Below are positions 21,005 to 61,609 of a DNA stretch of 64,000 nucleotides, piece by piece (within the stretch, counting starts at the first letter, position 1; each line of letters opens with the position of its first letter). The position numbers and the translations under genes were made by a program. The notes under the pieces were generated by a model. That model saw nothing but the letters and a program-made list of their open reading frames with translations. It had not been told where the DNA came from and did not search any database. Location of the stretch: assembly GCA_964188305.1 (NCBI GenBank), contig OZ076894.1; one strand, 5' to 3'. The stretch is from Podarcis bocagei. Its lineage: Eukaryota.

Positions 21005-21136
21005 NNNNNNNNNNNNNNNNNNNNNNNNNNNNNNNNNNNNNNNNNNNNNNNNNNNNNNNNNNNNNNNNNNNNNNNNNNNNNNNNNNNNNNNNNNNNNNNN
21101 NNNNNNNNNNNNNNNNNNNNNNNNNNNNNNNNNNNN
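21005..21136. other. Assembly gap (132 N)
   Basis: Run of N flanked by T-rich sequence. Confidence 1.
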
Positions 21137-21838: not shown

Positions 21839-22594
21839 TTACCTCTTTCCAATCTCACTTTGCCTAAGGAACTGTATATTGTTAGCGCTGTCTGCTAATT
21901 CGGGGTATTGCTCCACGGAGAGTACATAGTACCCATCATATCCTTGGACTTTTCCAGCACTCAACAGTTGCCTCTTTTCCCCTTCTGTCCATAACCTGGC
22001 ACCTTCCTCTCCATCTCTCACTCTTTGTTGTTCTCTGGCCCAGGCATTGGAAAGAGCCCTTTGCCTAGCCTGCTCTAATATCCGTGCCTTCTCCTCATCA
22101 AGTGTCATGCCGTAGCGGACATGAAGAGCCAGCGCACCATACTGCATTTCAACATCGGCAAACCTACGAGTCCTGCCGTTCACTACAGTGGTAGACTGGG
22201 AAACAGTGACGTTGATACCATTTTCTAGGGCCTTTCGTCCGCTAGTCAGTCTCAGCGTGCCCAGGTCACTCTCTGGCGAGGTGGTCTTGATGAAATAGTG
22301 TGTGTCCTTTCCTTCAATGGTGAAATGCAGGTTTTCTAGGTAGTATGCATTGTTCAGAACAGCTGCCACTTTGATACAATCCTCGTTTGCAATGTTAAGC
22401 ACATTAGTCTGCACTTTGCCTTGATTGACAGCCAGCATAACCCCTTTCCCAATCAAAGACTTCACAGTTGCGAACCACAACCACGATTTCTCGCCGCCGG
22501 GTCTGCGCTTGCTGATCTGGACTTCTGCCATCTTTCCTAGGGACAGGAAAGCCTTTGCTTGCCTTGCCACTTGTTGTTGCACTCCAGAAATTGG
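21839..22594 (-). CDS. TENM3: Teneurin-3 last coding exon ([12 protein letters not shown]...RQSEIGKR*; ABD, Tox-GHH and TCAP-3)
   Basis: Acceptor ttttcag|CCA; TAA stop at 21841-21839; C-terminus [43 protein letters not shown] is of the TENM3 type. Confidence 0.97.
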
Positions 22595-54660: not shown

Positions 54661-54893
54661 CTTTGGGGCTCATGAGGGTCGCTTCTACAGCCTTGCCACC
54701 ATCACCACATCTGGCTTCGTCAAATGGAAGGCACTGCTCCCCAGTTCCTGCTACCACTTCAGCATTTTTTGTCAAGTCCTTTGCCCCAGTGAGTGACTTT
54801 GGACGGTAAATCCTTCGTGTGTTGGTGTCAGAAACATACAATTCTCCTGTGACTGGGTCAGTTGCAAGGTAGTATCTATGAGCCGGGTTACTG
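54661..54893 (-). CDS. TENM3: Teneurin-3 exon ([14 protein letters not shown]...TLMSPKG; NHL repeats)
   Basis: Acceptor tctgcag|CAGTAAC (alternative AG 3 nt downstream), donor G|gtggag; 233 nt, phase 2 to phase 1. Confidence 0.94.
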
Positions 54894-55376
54894 CTGCAGA
54901 AAGGGAAACAACACGTTTTAGCACAGTAAGCAATATTCACTATTACATTTCAAAAGACAGTCTATCAGTTGGACTTAGAAAGCAAATAATTGAAGCAAGC
55001 AACCCCTGTTGCCATTCAAAAGTTAGAGTGAAGAAGGCAGCCATAGCTGAGTGTGGTGGAAGTGATCTTAACACACATTCTTAGTCTTGGGGACCAACAG
55101 CTCTGAATGTAGCAAATCTGTGTTCAAACCATTTTTATTGCACTGCAGTGTCCATCTCACTTCACCCCTAGTCATAATGGTATCAAAAAGGCCCAATAAA
55201 AACATGGTATGCTTGCTTCTTACTTTCTGCAAAGTATTTTCAAGGGTGGGAGGGGGAACAGAAAGTGTTGCTGTTGTTTTAAACACATTGTATGTTATGT
55301 GTGAACTCTGCTGACTCTGAAAAGAGAATGTGTAAGCGAAAATCAGTGGTTTTGTTTGAAGTAAGTGTTTAATGAA

Positions 55377-55730
55377 GGGACGCGGGTGGTGCTGTGGGTT
55401 AAACCACAGAGCCTAGGACTGCCGATCAGAAGGTCGGCAGTTTGAATCCCCGCAACAGGGTGAGCTCCCGTTGCTTGGTCCTAGCTCCTGCCAACCTAGC
55501 AGTTCGAAAGCACGTCAAAGTGCAAGTAGATAAATAGGTACCACTCCGGTGGGAAGGTAAACAGTGTTTCCGTGTGCTGCTCTGGTTCGCCAGAAGCGGC
55601 TTAGTCATGCTGGCCACATGACGCGGAAGCTGTACGCCGGCTCCCTTGGCCAATAAAGCGAGATGAGTGCCGCAACCCCAGAGTCGGCCACTACTGGACC
55701 TAATGGTCAGGGGTCCCTTTACCTTTACCT
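55377..55730 (+). mobile_element. Full-length Sauria SINE (Squam1, lacertid type)
   Basis: GGGACGCGGGTGG head with A and B boxes, conserved body GTGCAAGTAGATAAATAGGTACC, (ACCTTT)n tail. Confidence 0.93.
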
Positions 55731-58700
55731 AAGTGTAATGTTGGTTAGTTAAAAGTTGGTTAGTGTATTGTTGTTTTGCAATTGAGAAACAGTCAAATAA
55801 ATACATATTTTTAAAAGACGGGAGGAGTGTTGATGTATGGATTCTTCCACCTTGTGGAAAGGTAATGGAATAAACACCGTTTTGGTTCCTTTTAATTATA
55901 TAAATGTGCAAACGTCATTTTGAGTATTACCTTCAAATCAACAGCACTGGATTAGATCACTCTACAGCCTATGTTTTTCAAATTGCACCTATGTCACTAA
56001 CTATATTATTTCAAGTAATCTAGGCCACTTGAGTACATGATGCATAATATTCATAAACAGAAGAGACTGTTCATGCTACTGATTGGAAGGCATGTGATTA
56101 CTGGATGTGATTTAACAGGTCAGATGGCATGTTTTAGAAGTAGTTCAGTTTCTTGTCTTAAGTCACCTTAAATCATTGCAAACTTTCACATAAAACTACC
56201 GAATATGCTGGACCATCCTTCTATGAAATAAAGCCACTTTTCAAAAAACATAGAGCACATGACACCACAAACCTTATACAACTGAAACATTTCTCTCCTA
56301 TGGAATGAGTAGCTCTAGAGAATACATTTGTTGCTCAAAGATACAATCCAGAAGCTTAATTAGTTGCATCTATGACAGAGGATCTGAGTTATGGTGCTCA
56401 GAACTGAAATGAATATATAGATGGCAGTGCTAGTGCCTGCTAACACAGAGCCCAAGCGCCATGGCAGTCAGTTGCATCTCTAATGTGTTTGCAAATGCAG
56501 TGCTAAAATGTACCTACCAATCTTGGTGATATCTGAGCATCTGTTCACAAAACGTAGTGCCTCGTATTTCATAAATATAACACAGTGCTAATGTACTTCT
56601 GTTTGCAAAAGGCAACCGAGGCCAACATAAACAAGTTGTGAACAAATTACATCTTGGAGCACAGACATTTCTGAAGTATACAACTAAAGCAATGTAACAT
56701 CCAAAACAAAATAAAACAGCAGCAGAATAGGCACAAAATAAAAAAGCAACATGGTATAACAATACTGTGAAAGAGCTAAAACCACTAAACATTTTTAAAG
56801 ACTGAAAAGCCCAGGAAACCATAAAGGTCTTCACCTGGCACCTTTAGGTAGGTTATTCAATTACTAGGGAGCCACCACAAAAAAGTCCTATCTCTACCTC
56901 ATCACATTTAGCATGGGAACTTGAAGAAGCACCTCTATGTAGATGACTTTAGGACCCAAGCAAGTGGTGGAGTTGATTGTCAGGTAACCTGGTCCAAAGC
57001 AGAGGGAAATTTAGGGCAGTGCGACTGGTTCCACTGCACTGGATACGGAGTCTAGGGGGTGCTGCAGGGCTTCACGACTAGGAAGTAGTCAATTGAGCAG
57101 GAAAAGGGTTTTTATTTGCCTTTTTTAAACTTCTGAATGCTCTGTTAACTAGATTTAGCTTTTCTCTATTTCTGAGAACTAGCCACGTAACTTAAAAGAG
57201 GTTTTTGTGCAACCCTGAACCTAAACTATGATGGTAATAATAGATTTGAAAAGATATATGTGCCTTTTTATATATGTACTTTTAATCTCTGTTCATTAAT
57301 GTGCTTATTTGTTATATGCAATTCTTTTTTTGAACAGCACCAGGTGTATGGATAGTGCTTTAATTATTGGCATAAACAAATCTTTATATAAAATCCAACT
57401 TTGGATAAGTTTCAGGGCAATTAGTTTGGTTGCAGAATGATGAACAGTTTGAAATTAAAGCTTAAAACACATAATTTGCAGTATATTGTGGTTGGTTGGA
57501 TTTTTAACCAATGTACTCCATCATTGATAAAAGGAGAAAGTGAACACGCAACATACACACCCAAATTATTATTTGCATGGTGAAAAAGAATGGCCCCAAA
57601 TAGTATATTAATGTAAGGAAAGTTATCTTTGGAGTATTATAGGTGGAGAAATTTTAACTTATATGGTAGAAATGGTCTGTACAGCTTTAGGTAGAGACCT
57701 ACATGAGTGAATGCCGTATCCTGCTCCCCTGCCAAAAAAAACCGCACAAAGAAAACACGATGTCAGGGACAAAACTAGAACCTGTCTCCCTAACATGTTA
57801 TGTTTCTACGTGGGGGAAATTTCTGTACAGCAGAGCATTCAATAATCTGGAGCCCCACGTGCATCATGAAAAGGTACAGCTGAGGAATTAGTTTACTACC
57901 TCAGCCTTGGTTGGGGAAAGATGTCAAATGATCAATGTTCATAGTTATATAACTGCCCTGTAAACAATTAAGAACAAATGCTCAATAAAGATGGGACATA
58001 GTCTAACCACTGTGTAAGCTTTATACCAGCATATGAGGATGAATGCTGAATGAACAAGTCATCTGATTTCTTTGCCATTAGGATTATTAAATCAATGAAA
58101 ATGTGTGGATAATTCTAGTGGAGGCTCCTGACAAGTACAACATTTATAACATGAGTAGAGAAATCATTTTAGTACAATTTTGAAAATGACACTAGCTGTG
58201 CTATTGCCTGCCCCGCACAAGGTAGATGAATCTCTGAAGAATAATCATTAGCATGCTCCATGAGAATCCACGGCACTGAAAATAACCTCAACTCAGGAGA
58301 CTTCAAAGACTCTGCGCTCTAGAGATTGACAATAATAATCTTGGCTGGCTGTAAAATGGCTGTTTTTGACTAACATGGGATATTCCCTTCTTTCTATTGA
58401 AACAAAATCTTTACCTTAATGTAGGCATTACAGGGCATACTTGGTGTAGTAAAAATCCTTCATAGACAGAAAAATATCCAGTCTCTGCTACTGCAGTTGC
58501 CTCTGCAGCTCTTTATACATCTTTGTATTTCTCTAGGGAATCTCTGTAGTAGTAGACTAATCTCAAAGATGTTGAACTCAACATTAATACACAATTGCCT
58601 GCTTCCCTCTAGAAATGTCCTTTGTAGCAGAACCACACTAGTCTATCCAGGAAGTGCAACTCATATAACATTGAACATGCAACTGTTTTTGCCTGTAGTT

Positions 58701-59630
58701 CTCCAAAGGCTAAAGACTTTCCCCACTAAAGACAAGTGGATTACTCCAGAAGAATGATATATGGATCACACATTCACTTTCCCTAGTCCAGTATTTGAGA
58801 GTACGAGTGCTGTATAATATAGTTAAATCACAGAAAATGGGTATGACTTAACATATGTTCTTAATTCCCCAATATGCTTAGCAACAGATGAACAACAGAA
58901 TGAAGGGAGCCATGTGTAACAACTTTTGAATGCATGTCATATTTTGCATTTGGTATAATATTAAAATGTGAATTTACAAAGTATTCTATCTAATGACTGT
59001 TAAAGCATCAGCTGGTTTCAATGGACAGAGGGCACTGGTTGTTGTTGTTTTTTAAAAGCAATAATGAACCTTCAGAATGATATGAGAACAGCTGACAGCT
59101 ATGCTTATAATTTAAAATAAGGGTGCATATTATATTTAGTCATGGAGAAAATGCTACTTGCCGACACTACACAAAGCAACATATGTGAAACATTAATTCT
59201 GAAATATAAAAAACCTTTCACAGTTAAGGAAGAAAACACACATGAGGCAGTAGAACCAGAAGCCCGAGTGAATTTCAACAGAAACCAGACGTAATAAAAT
59301 AAAATGTAGGTCTCTGGGGATTTGTGTAAGAGGGGGAGAAAGACCAAAAATAAAGACGAAGCATGCATGATAATAAGGGGGGTTTCTTAATGTCACCCCC
59401 CATTACAGCAGTGATGTAATGCATGTGTCTAGCAAATAATTTCAGACTGAACTCTGCCCACTTCATTCTAGCTAGTGGCAGTCACTGTGATCACAGAACA
59501 GAAAGCAAAGCGCTGTCCATGCTGTTTTATCACCCTCTTCTTTAAAGATATGCCTAGCCGTAATTCAGTGTGAATCATCTACACTTTGCTCTTATGAAGA
59601 TAGGATGTTGCCATGTCATATACTGAGTTA

Positions 59631-59983
59631 AAGGTAAAGGGACCCCTGACCACTGGGTCCAGTCGTGGCTGACTCTGGGGTTGCGGCGCTCATTTCGCTT
59701 TATTGGCCGAGGGAGCCGGCGTACAGCTTCCGGGTCATGTGGCCAGCATGACTAAGCCGCTTCTGGCGAACCAGAGCAGCGCACAGAAACGCCGTTTACC
59801 TTCCCGCCGGAGCGGTACCTATTTATCTACTTGCACTTTTGACGTGCTTTTGAACTTCTAGGTTGGCAGGAGCAGGGACTGAGCAACAGGAGCTCACCCC
59901 GTCACGGGGATTCGAACCGCCAACCTTCTGATATCATCAAGTCCTAGGCTCTGTGGTTTAACCCACAATGCCACCCGCGTCCC
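59631..59983 (-). mobile_element. Full-length Sauria SINE
   Basis: Reverse complement of the 55377 copy; flanked by TSD tatactgagtta. Confidence 0.93.
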
Positions 59984-59995
59984 TATACTGAGTTA

Positions 59996-60203
59996 AAGGT
60001 AAAGGGACCCCTGACCATTAGGTCCAGTCGTGGCCGACTCTGGGGTTGCAGCGCCCATCTTGCTTTATTGGTCAAGGGAGCCGGCGTACAGCTTCCAGGT
60101 CATGTGGCCAGCATGACTAAGCCGCTTCTGGCGAACCAGAGCAGCGCACGGAAACGCCGTTTACCTTCCCGCCAGAGCAGTACCTATTTATCTACTATTT
60201 ATC
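59996..60203 (-). mobile_element. 5'-truncated Sauria SINE
   Basis: 3' part only, up to TACCTATTTATCTACT; flanked by the same TSD tatactgagtta. Confidence 0.9.
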
Positions 60204-60978
60204 TATACTGAGTTAGACCTTGGCTAATGTATTTGTCTGCAGTGACTGATGCTCTCTCTCTGGAATCCGAGATACGAGTCTTCCTTAGCGCTACCTGGAG
60301 ATGCCAGGGATTGTTCTGCCATTGAGCCACATAGCTGGTTTTGTTCTCCACTGCTAAGTGGCGCAGGCATGCTGCACACATAACATGCCCATCACTGGAT
60401 TTCTGTATCAGTGGTTATTATAAACCTGGCAGCTGAATGTTTGAATTGACTCCACTGAAACACACAGCATTTCAGGTGATGCAAAGACAAAATGAAAGTT
60501 CTGTCTGTGGCATTCAGGGCAAGGATAGAACAATGAAAAGGAAAGGATGTTGGTGAATGAGTGAGGCAGGGATTACATAAGCACATCAAGGAGGAAAAAT
60601 AGGAGCAATACCTTACAGACAGGCTGGAAATGGAAAACAAAAAGTGATGGGGCGCAAGCAATGTTTTTATTTATTTATCTAGTCATTTCAGACATTTATA
60701 CTCTATCCTTTAAATGACTTTCCTGGGATGCCTTATGATAAAATATAAATATTTTAACTAGGACAGGGAAAGAATTTGGGTTATGTTGAATAGTAGCAAT
60801 CTTCCAAACTTACACCTCTCTATGATTTAAGGCAAAAATAGTCATTTTTATAGAGCACTCCTTCCTTATGATCGTAACAATTTTTATAGCACTTCAATCT
60901 ATTGAATTTATTTGTTCATTCTTTTTTAAAGGAAAGAACACTTTGAACAAAAAGTACGAACATGCTTAAAATGCTTAC

Positions 60979-60999
60979 CTATGTCTAAAATCTTTATTT
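60979..60999 (-). CDS. TENM3: Teneurin-3 alternative 21-nt microexon (splice insert B, R-NKDFRH-S)
   Basis: Minus strand reads ccaccaag|AAATAAAGATTTTAGACATAG|gtaagc. It is frame-preserving (phase 2-2) and encodes the known teneurin site-B peptide NKDFRHS. Not in the ORF track. Confidence 0.93.
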
Positions 61000-61359
61000 C
61001 TTGGTGGGAAGGCAAGGAAAGGAAGAGCAAAAAAAACAGTATTAGAAAAAAAGTTAGATGAAAAGTTGTTAAAAGAGGGAACAGTAAATAGGTAAAGGTG
61101 CTGATAAGGTTGCTGATTGTAATTCCATTCAGTCATTTTTTATCATCTGAATAGCTGAGATATTTTGACAGCTATCTCCATGAGTAAATGGCTTGAGAAA
61201 ATGTCCCATCTTTCTTCAACCTCATTTTAAAATATTATTTTTAAAGCATTTGCATTTTTATTACAGTGTTCAGGTGTATATGGAAACATGGTATCATAAA
61301 ATGACTGATTCACCACATAATCTCAAAACCAAATTTTTTAGGAGTAGGTAAAGATATAC

Positions 61360-61609
61360 CTTAGTTCAAGAACACTTGTTACATTTCCAGATGGGAATAT
61401 CCGTCGAACATAGTTAAAATCCCCTACGTACAGGCTTCCATCAATACCGCAAGCTAAGGCAACGGGAGCCAAAAGCTTATTGCCGTCTGCTTGACCATTG
61501 CAACTTGGGCAAGAAATGCTACGTCGTCGACCATTGCCCATTATACTACTGACAACTGGTGGCTGCTGAGAGATGAACTGATTTTCCCCATTGCCTTTGT
61601 AGAGGATTC
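61360..61609 (-). CDS. TENM3: Teneurin-3 coding exon ([12 protein letters not shown]...VTSVLELR; start of NHL beta-propeller); upstream exons lie beyond the window
   Basis: Translation matches teneurin-3; acceptor ttctccag|GA, donor AG|gtatat; 250 nt, phase 1 to phase 2. Confidence 0.96.

Follow-up and report, generated by a model that had tools for sequence, protein, structure and literature searches.

The 3' part of the TENM3 gene

The window analysed here, a stretch of 64,000 nt from contig OZ076894.1 of Podarcis bocagei, is occupied by the 3' third of the teneurin-3 gene TENM3, which lies on the minus strand. Eleven TENM3 exons, inferred from AG/GT splice sites and reading phase, were mapped between positions 21839 and 61609. 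All phases are consistent. The exons were searched singly rather than as a joined spliced model, and within this map the comparison with solved structures covers the two constitutive exons on either side of the microexon described below. The upstream one (61609..61360, minus strand, 250 nt) encodes the first blade of the TEN_NHL propeller; its acceptor AG is at 61611-61610, where the phase is consistent, and its donor GT is at 61359-61358. The downstream one (54893..54661, minus strand, 233 nt) encodes the second NHL blade, and its splice sites and phase are consistent as well.

The remaining exons, all on the minus strand, bounded by AG/GT and in phase, are located at 54055-53901, 51203-50329, 37616-37441, 36779-36544, 31877-31581, 29698-28087 (1612 nt), 25432-25302 and 22594-21839. 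The last of these encodes the C-terminal tail of the teneurin and includes the stop codon at 21841-21839. The intron at 50328-37617 is about 12.7 kb long. A run of 132 N at 21005-21136, approximately 700 nt past the TENM3 stop codon, is an assembly gap or a mask, presumably in the 3' UTR.

A microexon encoding splice insert B

A microexon of 21 nt (60999-60979, minus strand) is found between the exons for the first two NHL blades. It is preceded by the acceptor AG at 61001-61000 and followed by the donor GTAAGC at 60978-60973. The initial annotation had described an AG/GT-bounded, frame-keeping exon at this place; it was reproduced, and every coordinate given there proved exact when the minus strand was recomputed. 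The upstream exon, which ends 360 nt before the microexon, breaks off after two bases (AG) of a codon, and this split codon is completed by the first base of the downstream exon. The frame reads L-S-S without the microexon and L-R-N-K-D-F-R-H-S-S with it. Thus the net insert encoded by the microexon, read on the minus strand, consists of the seven residues RNKDFRH.

The two flanking exons, each searched alone, match teneurin-3 better than the paralogues. For the upstream exon, the alignment to mouse Ten3 chains covers its last 46 codons, with identity at 46 of 46 positions (E 8.7e-32), and Ten4 is the next best match (1.3e-26). The downstream exon is identical to mouse Ten3 chains at 76 of 77 positions (E 1.9e-49), followed by Ten2 (1.4e-42). 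The assignment of the gene to TENM3, made initially from the letters alone, is confirmed by these searches. The 82 full codons of the upstream exon are also 100% identical to nine protein clusters with the TEN_NHL domain PF25021, all nine being genomic read-through frames.

The position of the microexon coincides with a junction at which solved teneurin isoforms differ. In the B0 chains 6fay (375 then 377) and 8r54 (898 then 900) there is one residue between the alignments of the two exons, whereas in the A1B1 chains 8r50 and 9igs (907 then 916) there are eight. Thus the isoforms differ by seven residues exactly at the microexon junction, in agreement with the initial placement of the insert in the beta-propeller. 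Insert B of mouse Ten3 has the sequence RNKDFRH and is located between the first and second NHL propeller blades (Gogou et al. 2024, PMC11058771). The lizard peptide is equal to it. The insert RNKDFRH is added to the surface loop between NHL blades 1 and 2. In Ten2 chains the alignments of the flanking exons are separated by one or by eight residues, and the Ten4 chain 7bam has the long form. The same short and long spacing in Ten2 and the long one in Ten4 indicate that the paralogues share this splice site.

The downstream exon has a tandem CAG|CAG acceptor (NAGNAG, 54891-54896, minus strand). Choice of the distal AG would move the exon start to 54890 and drop one serine in frame. This serine is one of the two that follow the insert site, and its loss would affect the B0 and B1 forms alike. 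Both serines are present in the mouse structures.

Recurrence of the microexon in other genomes

AG/GT borders together with an intact frame do not by themselves prove anything, because the 6466-nt intron contains 15 AG/GT-bounded, in-phase, stop-free candidates of 21 nt. Such a number would be compatible with a pseudo-exon, an open frame that happens to stand between AG and GT in the intron and is no real exon. However, of these 15 candidates only 60999-60979 encodes the exact known insert and has counterparts at the corresponding position in other species. Its position is that of the isoform junction in the solved structures, and its splice contexts are identical in six other loci, as described below. 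Given the peptide, the junction and the recurrence in six loci, the pseudo-exon reading is effectively refuted and its probability is negligible.

The comparison loci (L001-L006) were Logan contigs of tetrapods from six runs. They contain five distinct sequences and represent four of the protein clusters with 100% identity. The comparison omitted the mammalian-looking read-through clusters P0003, P0005, P0008, P0009, P0070, P0075, P0076 and P0089; these could include human DNA, and P0070 is found on 87 contigs. The loci were scanned generically for AG-21 nt-GT frames in phase, and the candidates were then filtered on their translation. The same exon with the same peptide was found in all six, 353-423 nt past the same upstream exon. 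The acceptor context ACCAAG and the donor GTAAGCAT are identical in the window and in the six other loci.

The independence of these loci should not be overestimated. They are close to each other, with 84-97% identity in the intron, except that L004 is only about 70% identical to the others in the upstream intron. Their mutual closeness means that they count for hardly more than one or two independent lineages. The lizard intron is far more diverged: it is about 60% identical to the introns of these loci, that is, close to unalignable.

Judged by its sequence, the microexon at 60999-60979 is the lizard orthologue of teneurin-3 splice insert B, a real, ancient and previously known exon. The presence of the same exon at the same position in six other tetrapod loci argues for its being real and ancient.

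No exon resembling insert B was found in the flanks available for two teleosts, Xenoophorus (L007, 890 nt) and Merluccius (L008, 6004 nt). Its absence from these limited flanks suggests that the intron layout in fish is different or that the intron is longer.

A second 21-nt frame, in phase and bounded by AG/GT, occurs about 95-110 nt past the microexon in four of the six tetrapod loci (L001, 4836-4856; L002 and L003, 4801-4821; L004, 1037-1057). It encodes RCITRKED or RCMTRKED. The aligned stretch of the window is not bounded by AG/GT. Probably, the four loci share this frame only through their close kinship.

Three copies of an interspersed repeat, 213-314 nt long, lie at 55425-55737, 59619-59932 and 59984-60196, all of them in the 6-kb intron that follows the microexon. 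Two copies are direct (94% identity). One is inverted (90-92% identity) and located approximately 3.9-4.2 kb away. Pairing of the inverted copies in the pre-mRNA could place most of the intron in a loop; alternatively, the copies could be an editing substrate. Neither a tRNA-like gene (ARAGORN) nor an RNA family (Rfam) was found in these repeats.

The region upstream of the microexon

The region preceding the microexon on the minus strand contains a number of candidate regulatory elements. Firstly, there is an AG-free zone of 99 nt (61100-61002), preceded by an AG at 61102-61101, which leaves room for a distant branch point. The zone had been noticed initially and was reproduced with the same borders; a long zone is common to the six other loci as well (91 nt in five of them and 60 nt in L004). 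It is the longest among the 11 TENM3 acceptors in the window, the other ten having 23-53 nt. On the minus strand, AG-free gaps of at least 99 nt are seven out of 4446. Four further AG-free stretches of 95-113 nt occur in the same intron on the same strand (55730-55845, 57517-57628, 59216-59313 and 60506-60613). Since such zones are locally common, the 99-nt zone taken alone carries slightly less weight.

Secondly, the pyrimidine tract (61010..61049, minus strand; 85% pyrimidine over 40 nt) is set back from the acceptor AG, to about -11..-50 from the microexon. The pyrimidine content over -40..-4 is 0.89, the highest among the 11 TENM3 acceptors in the window; in the other loci the corresponding value for the tract is 0.76. 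The acceptor itself is AAG, preceded by the purine-interrupted CCACCA, and the donor GTAAGC is good.

Finally, this region contains two branch-like motifs and two TGC motifs, all pointed out in the initial annotation. The motif CTAAT (61045-61041, minus strand) is the best predicted branch-point candidate, with its adenosine at 61042, at a distance of 43 nt from the exon. The motif CTAAC is found at 61057-61053 on the same strand. The proximal TGC (61014-61012, minus strand, -15..-13) is a candidate SRRM3/4 UGC element, and the distal TGC (61029-61027, minus strand) is at -30..-28. Taken alone, such short motifs carry little weight: by chance, 15% of all 40-nt windows and 22% of pyrimidine-rich ones contain two TGC.

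The flanks of the microexon in the lizard and the six tetrapod loci were aligned, as the initial annotation had proposed. The upstream alignment covers -131..-11 in seven sequences (61010-61130 in the window), and the downstream one covers +13..+219 in seven sequences (60760-60966 in the window). In the upstream alignment the CTAAT block and CTTGC, which contains the proximal TGC, are invariant in all seven sequences, whereas the block aligned to CTAAC is CTGAA in the other six loci, and the distal TGC corresponds to CTG. Thus, of each pair of motifs one was supported and one was not: CTAAT and the proximal TGC hold, CTAAC and the distal TGC do not. The conserved motifs are slightly shifted relative to the exon, the adenosine of CTAAT being at -39 in the other loci and at -43 in the window, and the proximal TGC at -13 and -15, respectively. 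Apart from CTTGC, the tract and the block containing CTAAT, there is little conservation in the flanks when the window is compared with the other loci, and in the downstream alignment the identity is 25-60% per 20 columns. Taken over both flanks, the alignment retained CTAAT, the tract, the proximal TGC and the long AG-free zone from the initial set of elements, and did not retain CTAAC, the distal TGC and the downstream GCATG discussed in the next section. The retained four are thus the upstream elements common to diverged tetrapods.

This layout can be compared with published descriptions of neural microexons. The Srrm4-type layout consists of UGC and a UC-rich tract that immediately precede the exon (PMC12626420). 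In 74-79% of SRRM3/4-dependent microexons UGC is located between the branch point and the AG; it strongly helps the response to SRRM4, yet is not strictly required (10.1101/2024.09.17.613571). Neural microexons have predicted branch points with a median distance of 45-47 nt upstream and an extended tract; their 3' splice sites are weak, and the pyrimidine content peaks 15-30 nt upstream (PMC12871342). The lizard exon, with its 21 nt, falls within the 3-27 nt range of SRRM3/4-dependent neural microexons. The candidate UGC at -15 is situated between the predicted branch point and the AG and adjoins the tract with 0.89 pyrimidine. The branch-to-AG region is extended, as seen from the AG-free zone of 99 nt and the predicted branch adenosine at -43, not far from the published median.

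No RNA fold beyond that of shuffled sequences was found in the region 60900-61110 (z = -0.38), and no Rfam family was found in the whole window. The absence of a predicted fold agrees with the reported openness of the region upstream of neural microexons (PMC12871342). As far as can be judged from the motifs, the upstream layout is consistent with the published SRRM3/4 microexon architecture and is partly conserved. On the other hand, a response to SRRM4 does not strictly need UGC, and finding this element is no proof of dependence on SRRM4. No listing of the teneurin-3 insert-B exon as SRRM4-dependent was found in the papers cited here.

Candidate mechanism of regulation

The following mode of regulation may be suggested. 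In the lizard the microexon would be skipped by default, given its tiny size, the weak AAG acceptor and the pyrimidine tract set back from it. In neurons, as the layout and the conservation suggest, it would be included through binding of SRRM3/4 to the conserved UGC at -15. This candidate site would lie upstream of the acceptor AG and downstream of a distant branch point, for which the adenosine at -43 in the invariant CTAAT is the probable choice.

The exon might also be real and yet not serve as a regulated switch in the lizard, being always included or never used, with the motifs as inherited leftovers. Indeed, the presence of motifs is no proof of regulation. However, the seven codons, both splice contexts, CTAAT, the tract and UGC are all retained in deeply diverged sequences, in which the intron nearby is only about 60% identical. 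The retention of these elements in a drifting intron argues for continued use of the exon, and the absence of a regulated switch thus seems rather unlikely.

The downstream GCATG motif

A possible RBFOX core, GCATG, is located downstream of the microexon (60965-60961, minus strand). It starts at intron position +14 in the context AGCATG and is found only in the lizard lineage. The site noted in the initial annotation is indeed present 14 nt past the donor, but it occurs as AGCATG rather than TGCATG and is absent from the six other loci. In these loci no GCATG was found within 600 nt downstream, and the lizard AGCATG is aligned to AGAAGAT. Its absence there places the site outside the conserved design of the exon.

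One possibility is that RBFOX, acting at this site alongside SRRM3/4, is a main driver of inclusion in the lizard. Among the TENM3 exons in the window, the microexon has the GCATG nearest to its donor, the other donors having none closer than 36 nt, and by chance only 2% of positions have a GCATG within 20 nt. The RBFOX hexamer TGCATG has been reported as enriched in the sequence that immediately follows alternative microexons (PMC4317164). However, this enrichment concerns TGCATG, whereas the lizard site has the 5-mer core as AGCATG, and the motif is not shared by the six other tetrapod loci. Thus a leading role of RBFOX is doubtful, with only a modest chance of being correct, and since the GCATG is not shared, no role of RBFOX should be assumed from the motif alone.

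A narrower version would be that the lizard lineage acquired the GCATG at +14 recently, and that this placed RBFOX control on top of an ancestral insert-B switch controlled by SRRM3/4. If so, the cell-type pattern of the B1 and B0 isoforms in the lizard lineage would differ from that in the compared tetrapods. We consider this quite unlikely.

The explanation that best accounts for all these features, and that we consider probable, is that the microexon is the insert-B orthologue, subject to neural inclusion of the SRRM3/4 type, with GCATG as a lineage-specific extra that may add some RBFOX input.

Teneurin isoforms and comparison with known systems

Few microexon switches in synaptic adhesion have been studied as well as insert B of teneurin-3. 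The structures of both forms have been solved, their effects on cell clustering and axon guidance have been assayed, and there is a zebrafish line with the deletion. The lizard copy only confirms the known deep conservation of this insert, and the exon itself is already known. As a practical consequence, the 21-nt exon should be included in the gene model for TENM3 in the lizard genome.

The Ten3 form A0B0 causes no homophilic cell clustering, whereas any form with insert A or insert B clusters, and A0B1 shows the strongest clustering (PMC11058771). With insert B, another compact dimer is preferred and ventral chick retinal axons are attracted, and both A0B0 and A1B1 Ten3 still cluster with latrophilin-3 (PMC11058771). 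Insert-dependent loss of trans-binding to latrophilin has been demonstrated for Ten2 (PMC7195488). Thus the initial statement that insert B changes homophilic versus latrophilin trans-binding blends two paralogues: the homophilic part applies to Ten3, where binding of latrophilin-3 is kept, and the loss of latrophilin binding belongs to Ten2.

The closest known counterpart of the lizard exon is insert B of mouse teneurin-3. The gene, the exon junction, the seven-residue peptide and the location between NHL blades 1 and 2 are the same; the species is different. The lizard locus also has the additional GCATG at +14, which is absent from the insert-B loci of the compared tetrapods. With SRRM3/4-dependent neural microexons in general the exon shares its length, a conserved UGC, a set-back pyrimidine tract and an extended branch-to-AG region.

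Teneurin microexons have been described as conserved across vertebrates, and their inclusion rises as the brain develops (PMC12626420). The zebrafish tenm3 microexon is orthologous and developmentally regulated (PMC12626420). In supplement file 1 of that study, five successive columns give tenm3 inclusion values of 0, 0.09, 0.42, 0.56 and 0.68. As the study states that inclusion rises with brain development, these columns are read here as developmental stages. In a zebrafish line with a tenm3 B0 deletion the activity of the telencephalon is reduced (PMC12626420).

The same exon junction as in lizard Ten3 is used in Ten2, seen in 6vhh and 6fb3 without and with the insert, respectively, and in Ten4 (7bam). 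The inserts of Ten2 and Ten4, like that of Ten3, are short and reshape trans-synaptic binding (PMC7195488). The outcome, however, depends on the paralogue: in Ten2 the insert blocks trans-binding to latrophilin, whereas in Ten3 it mainly enables homophilic clustering.
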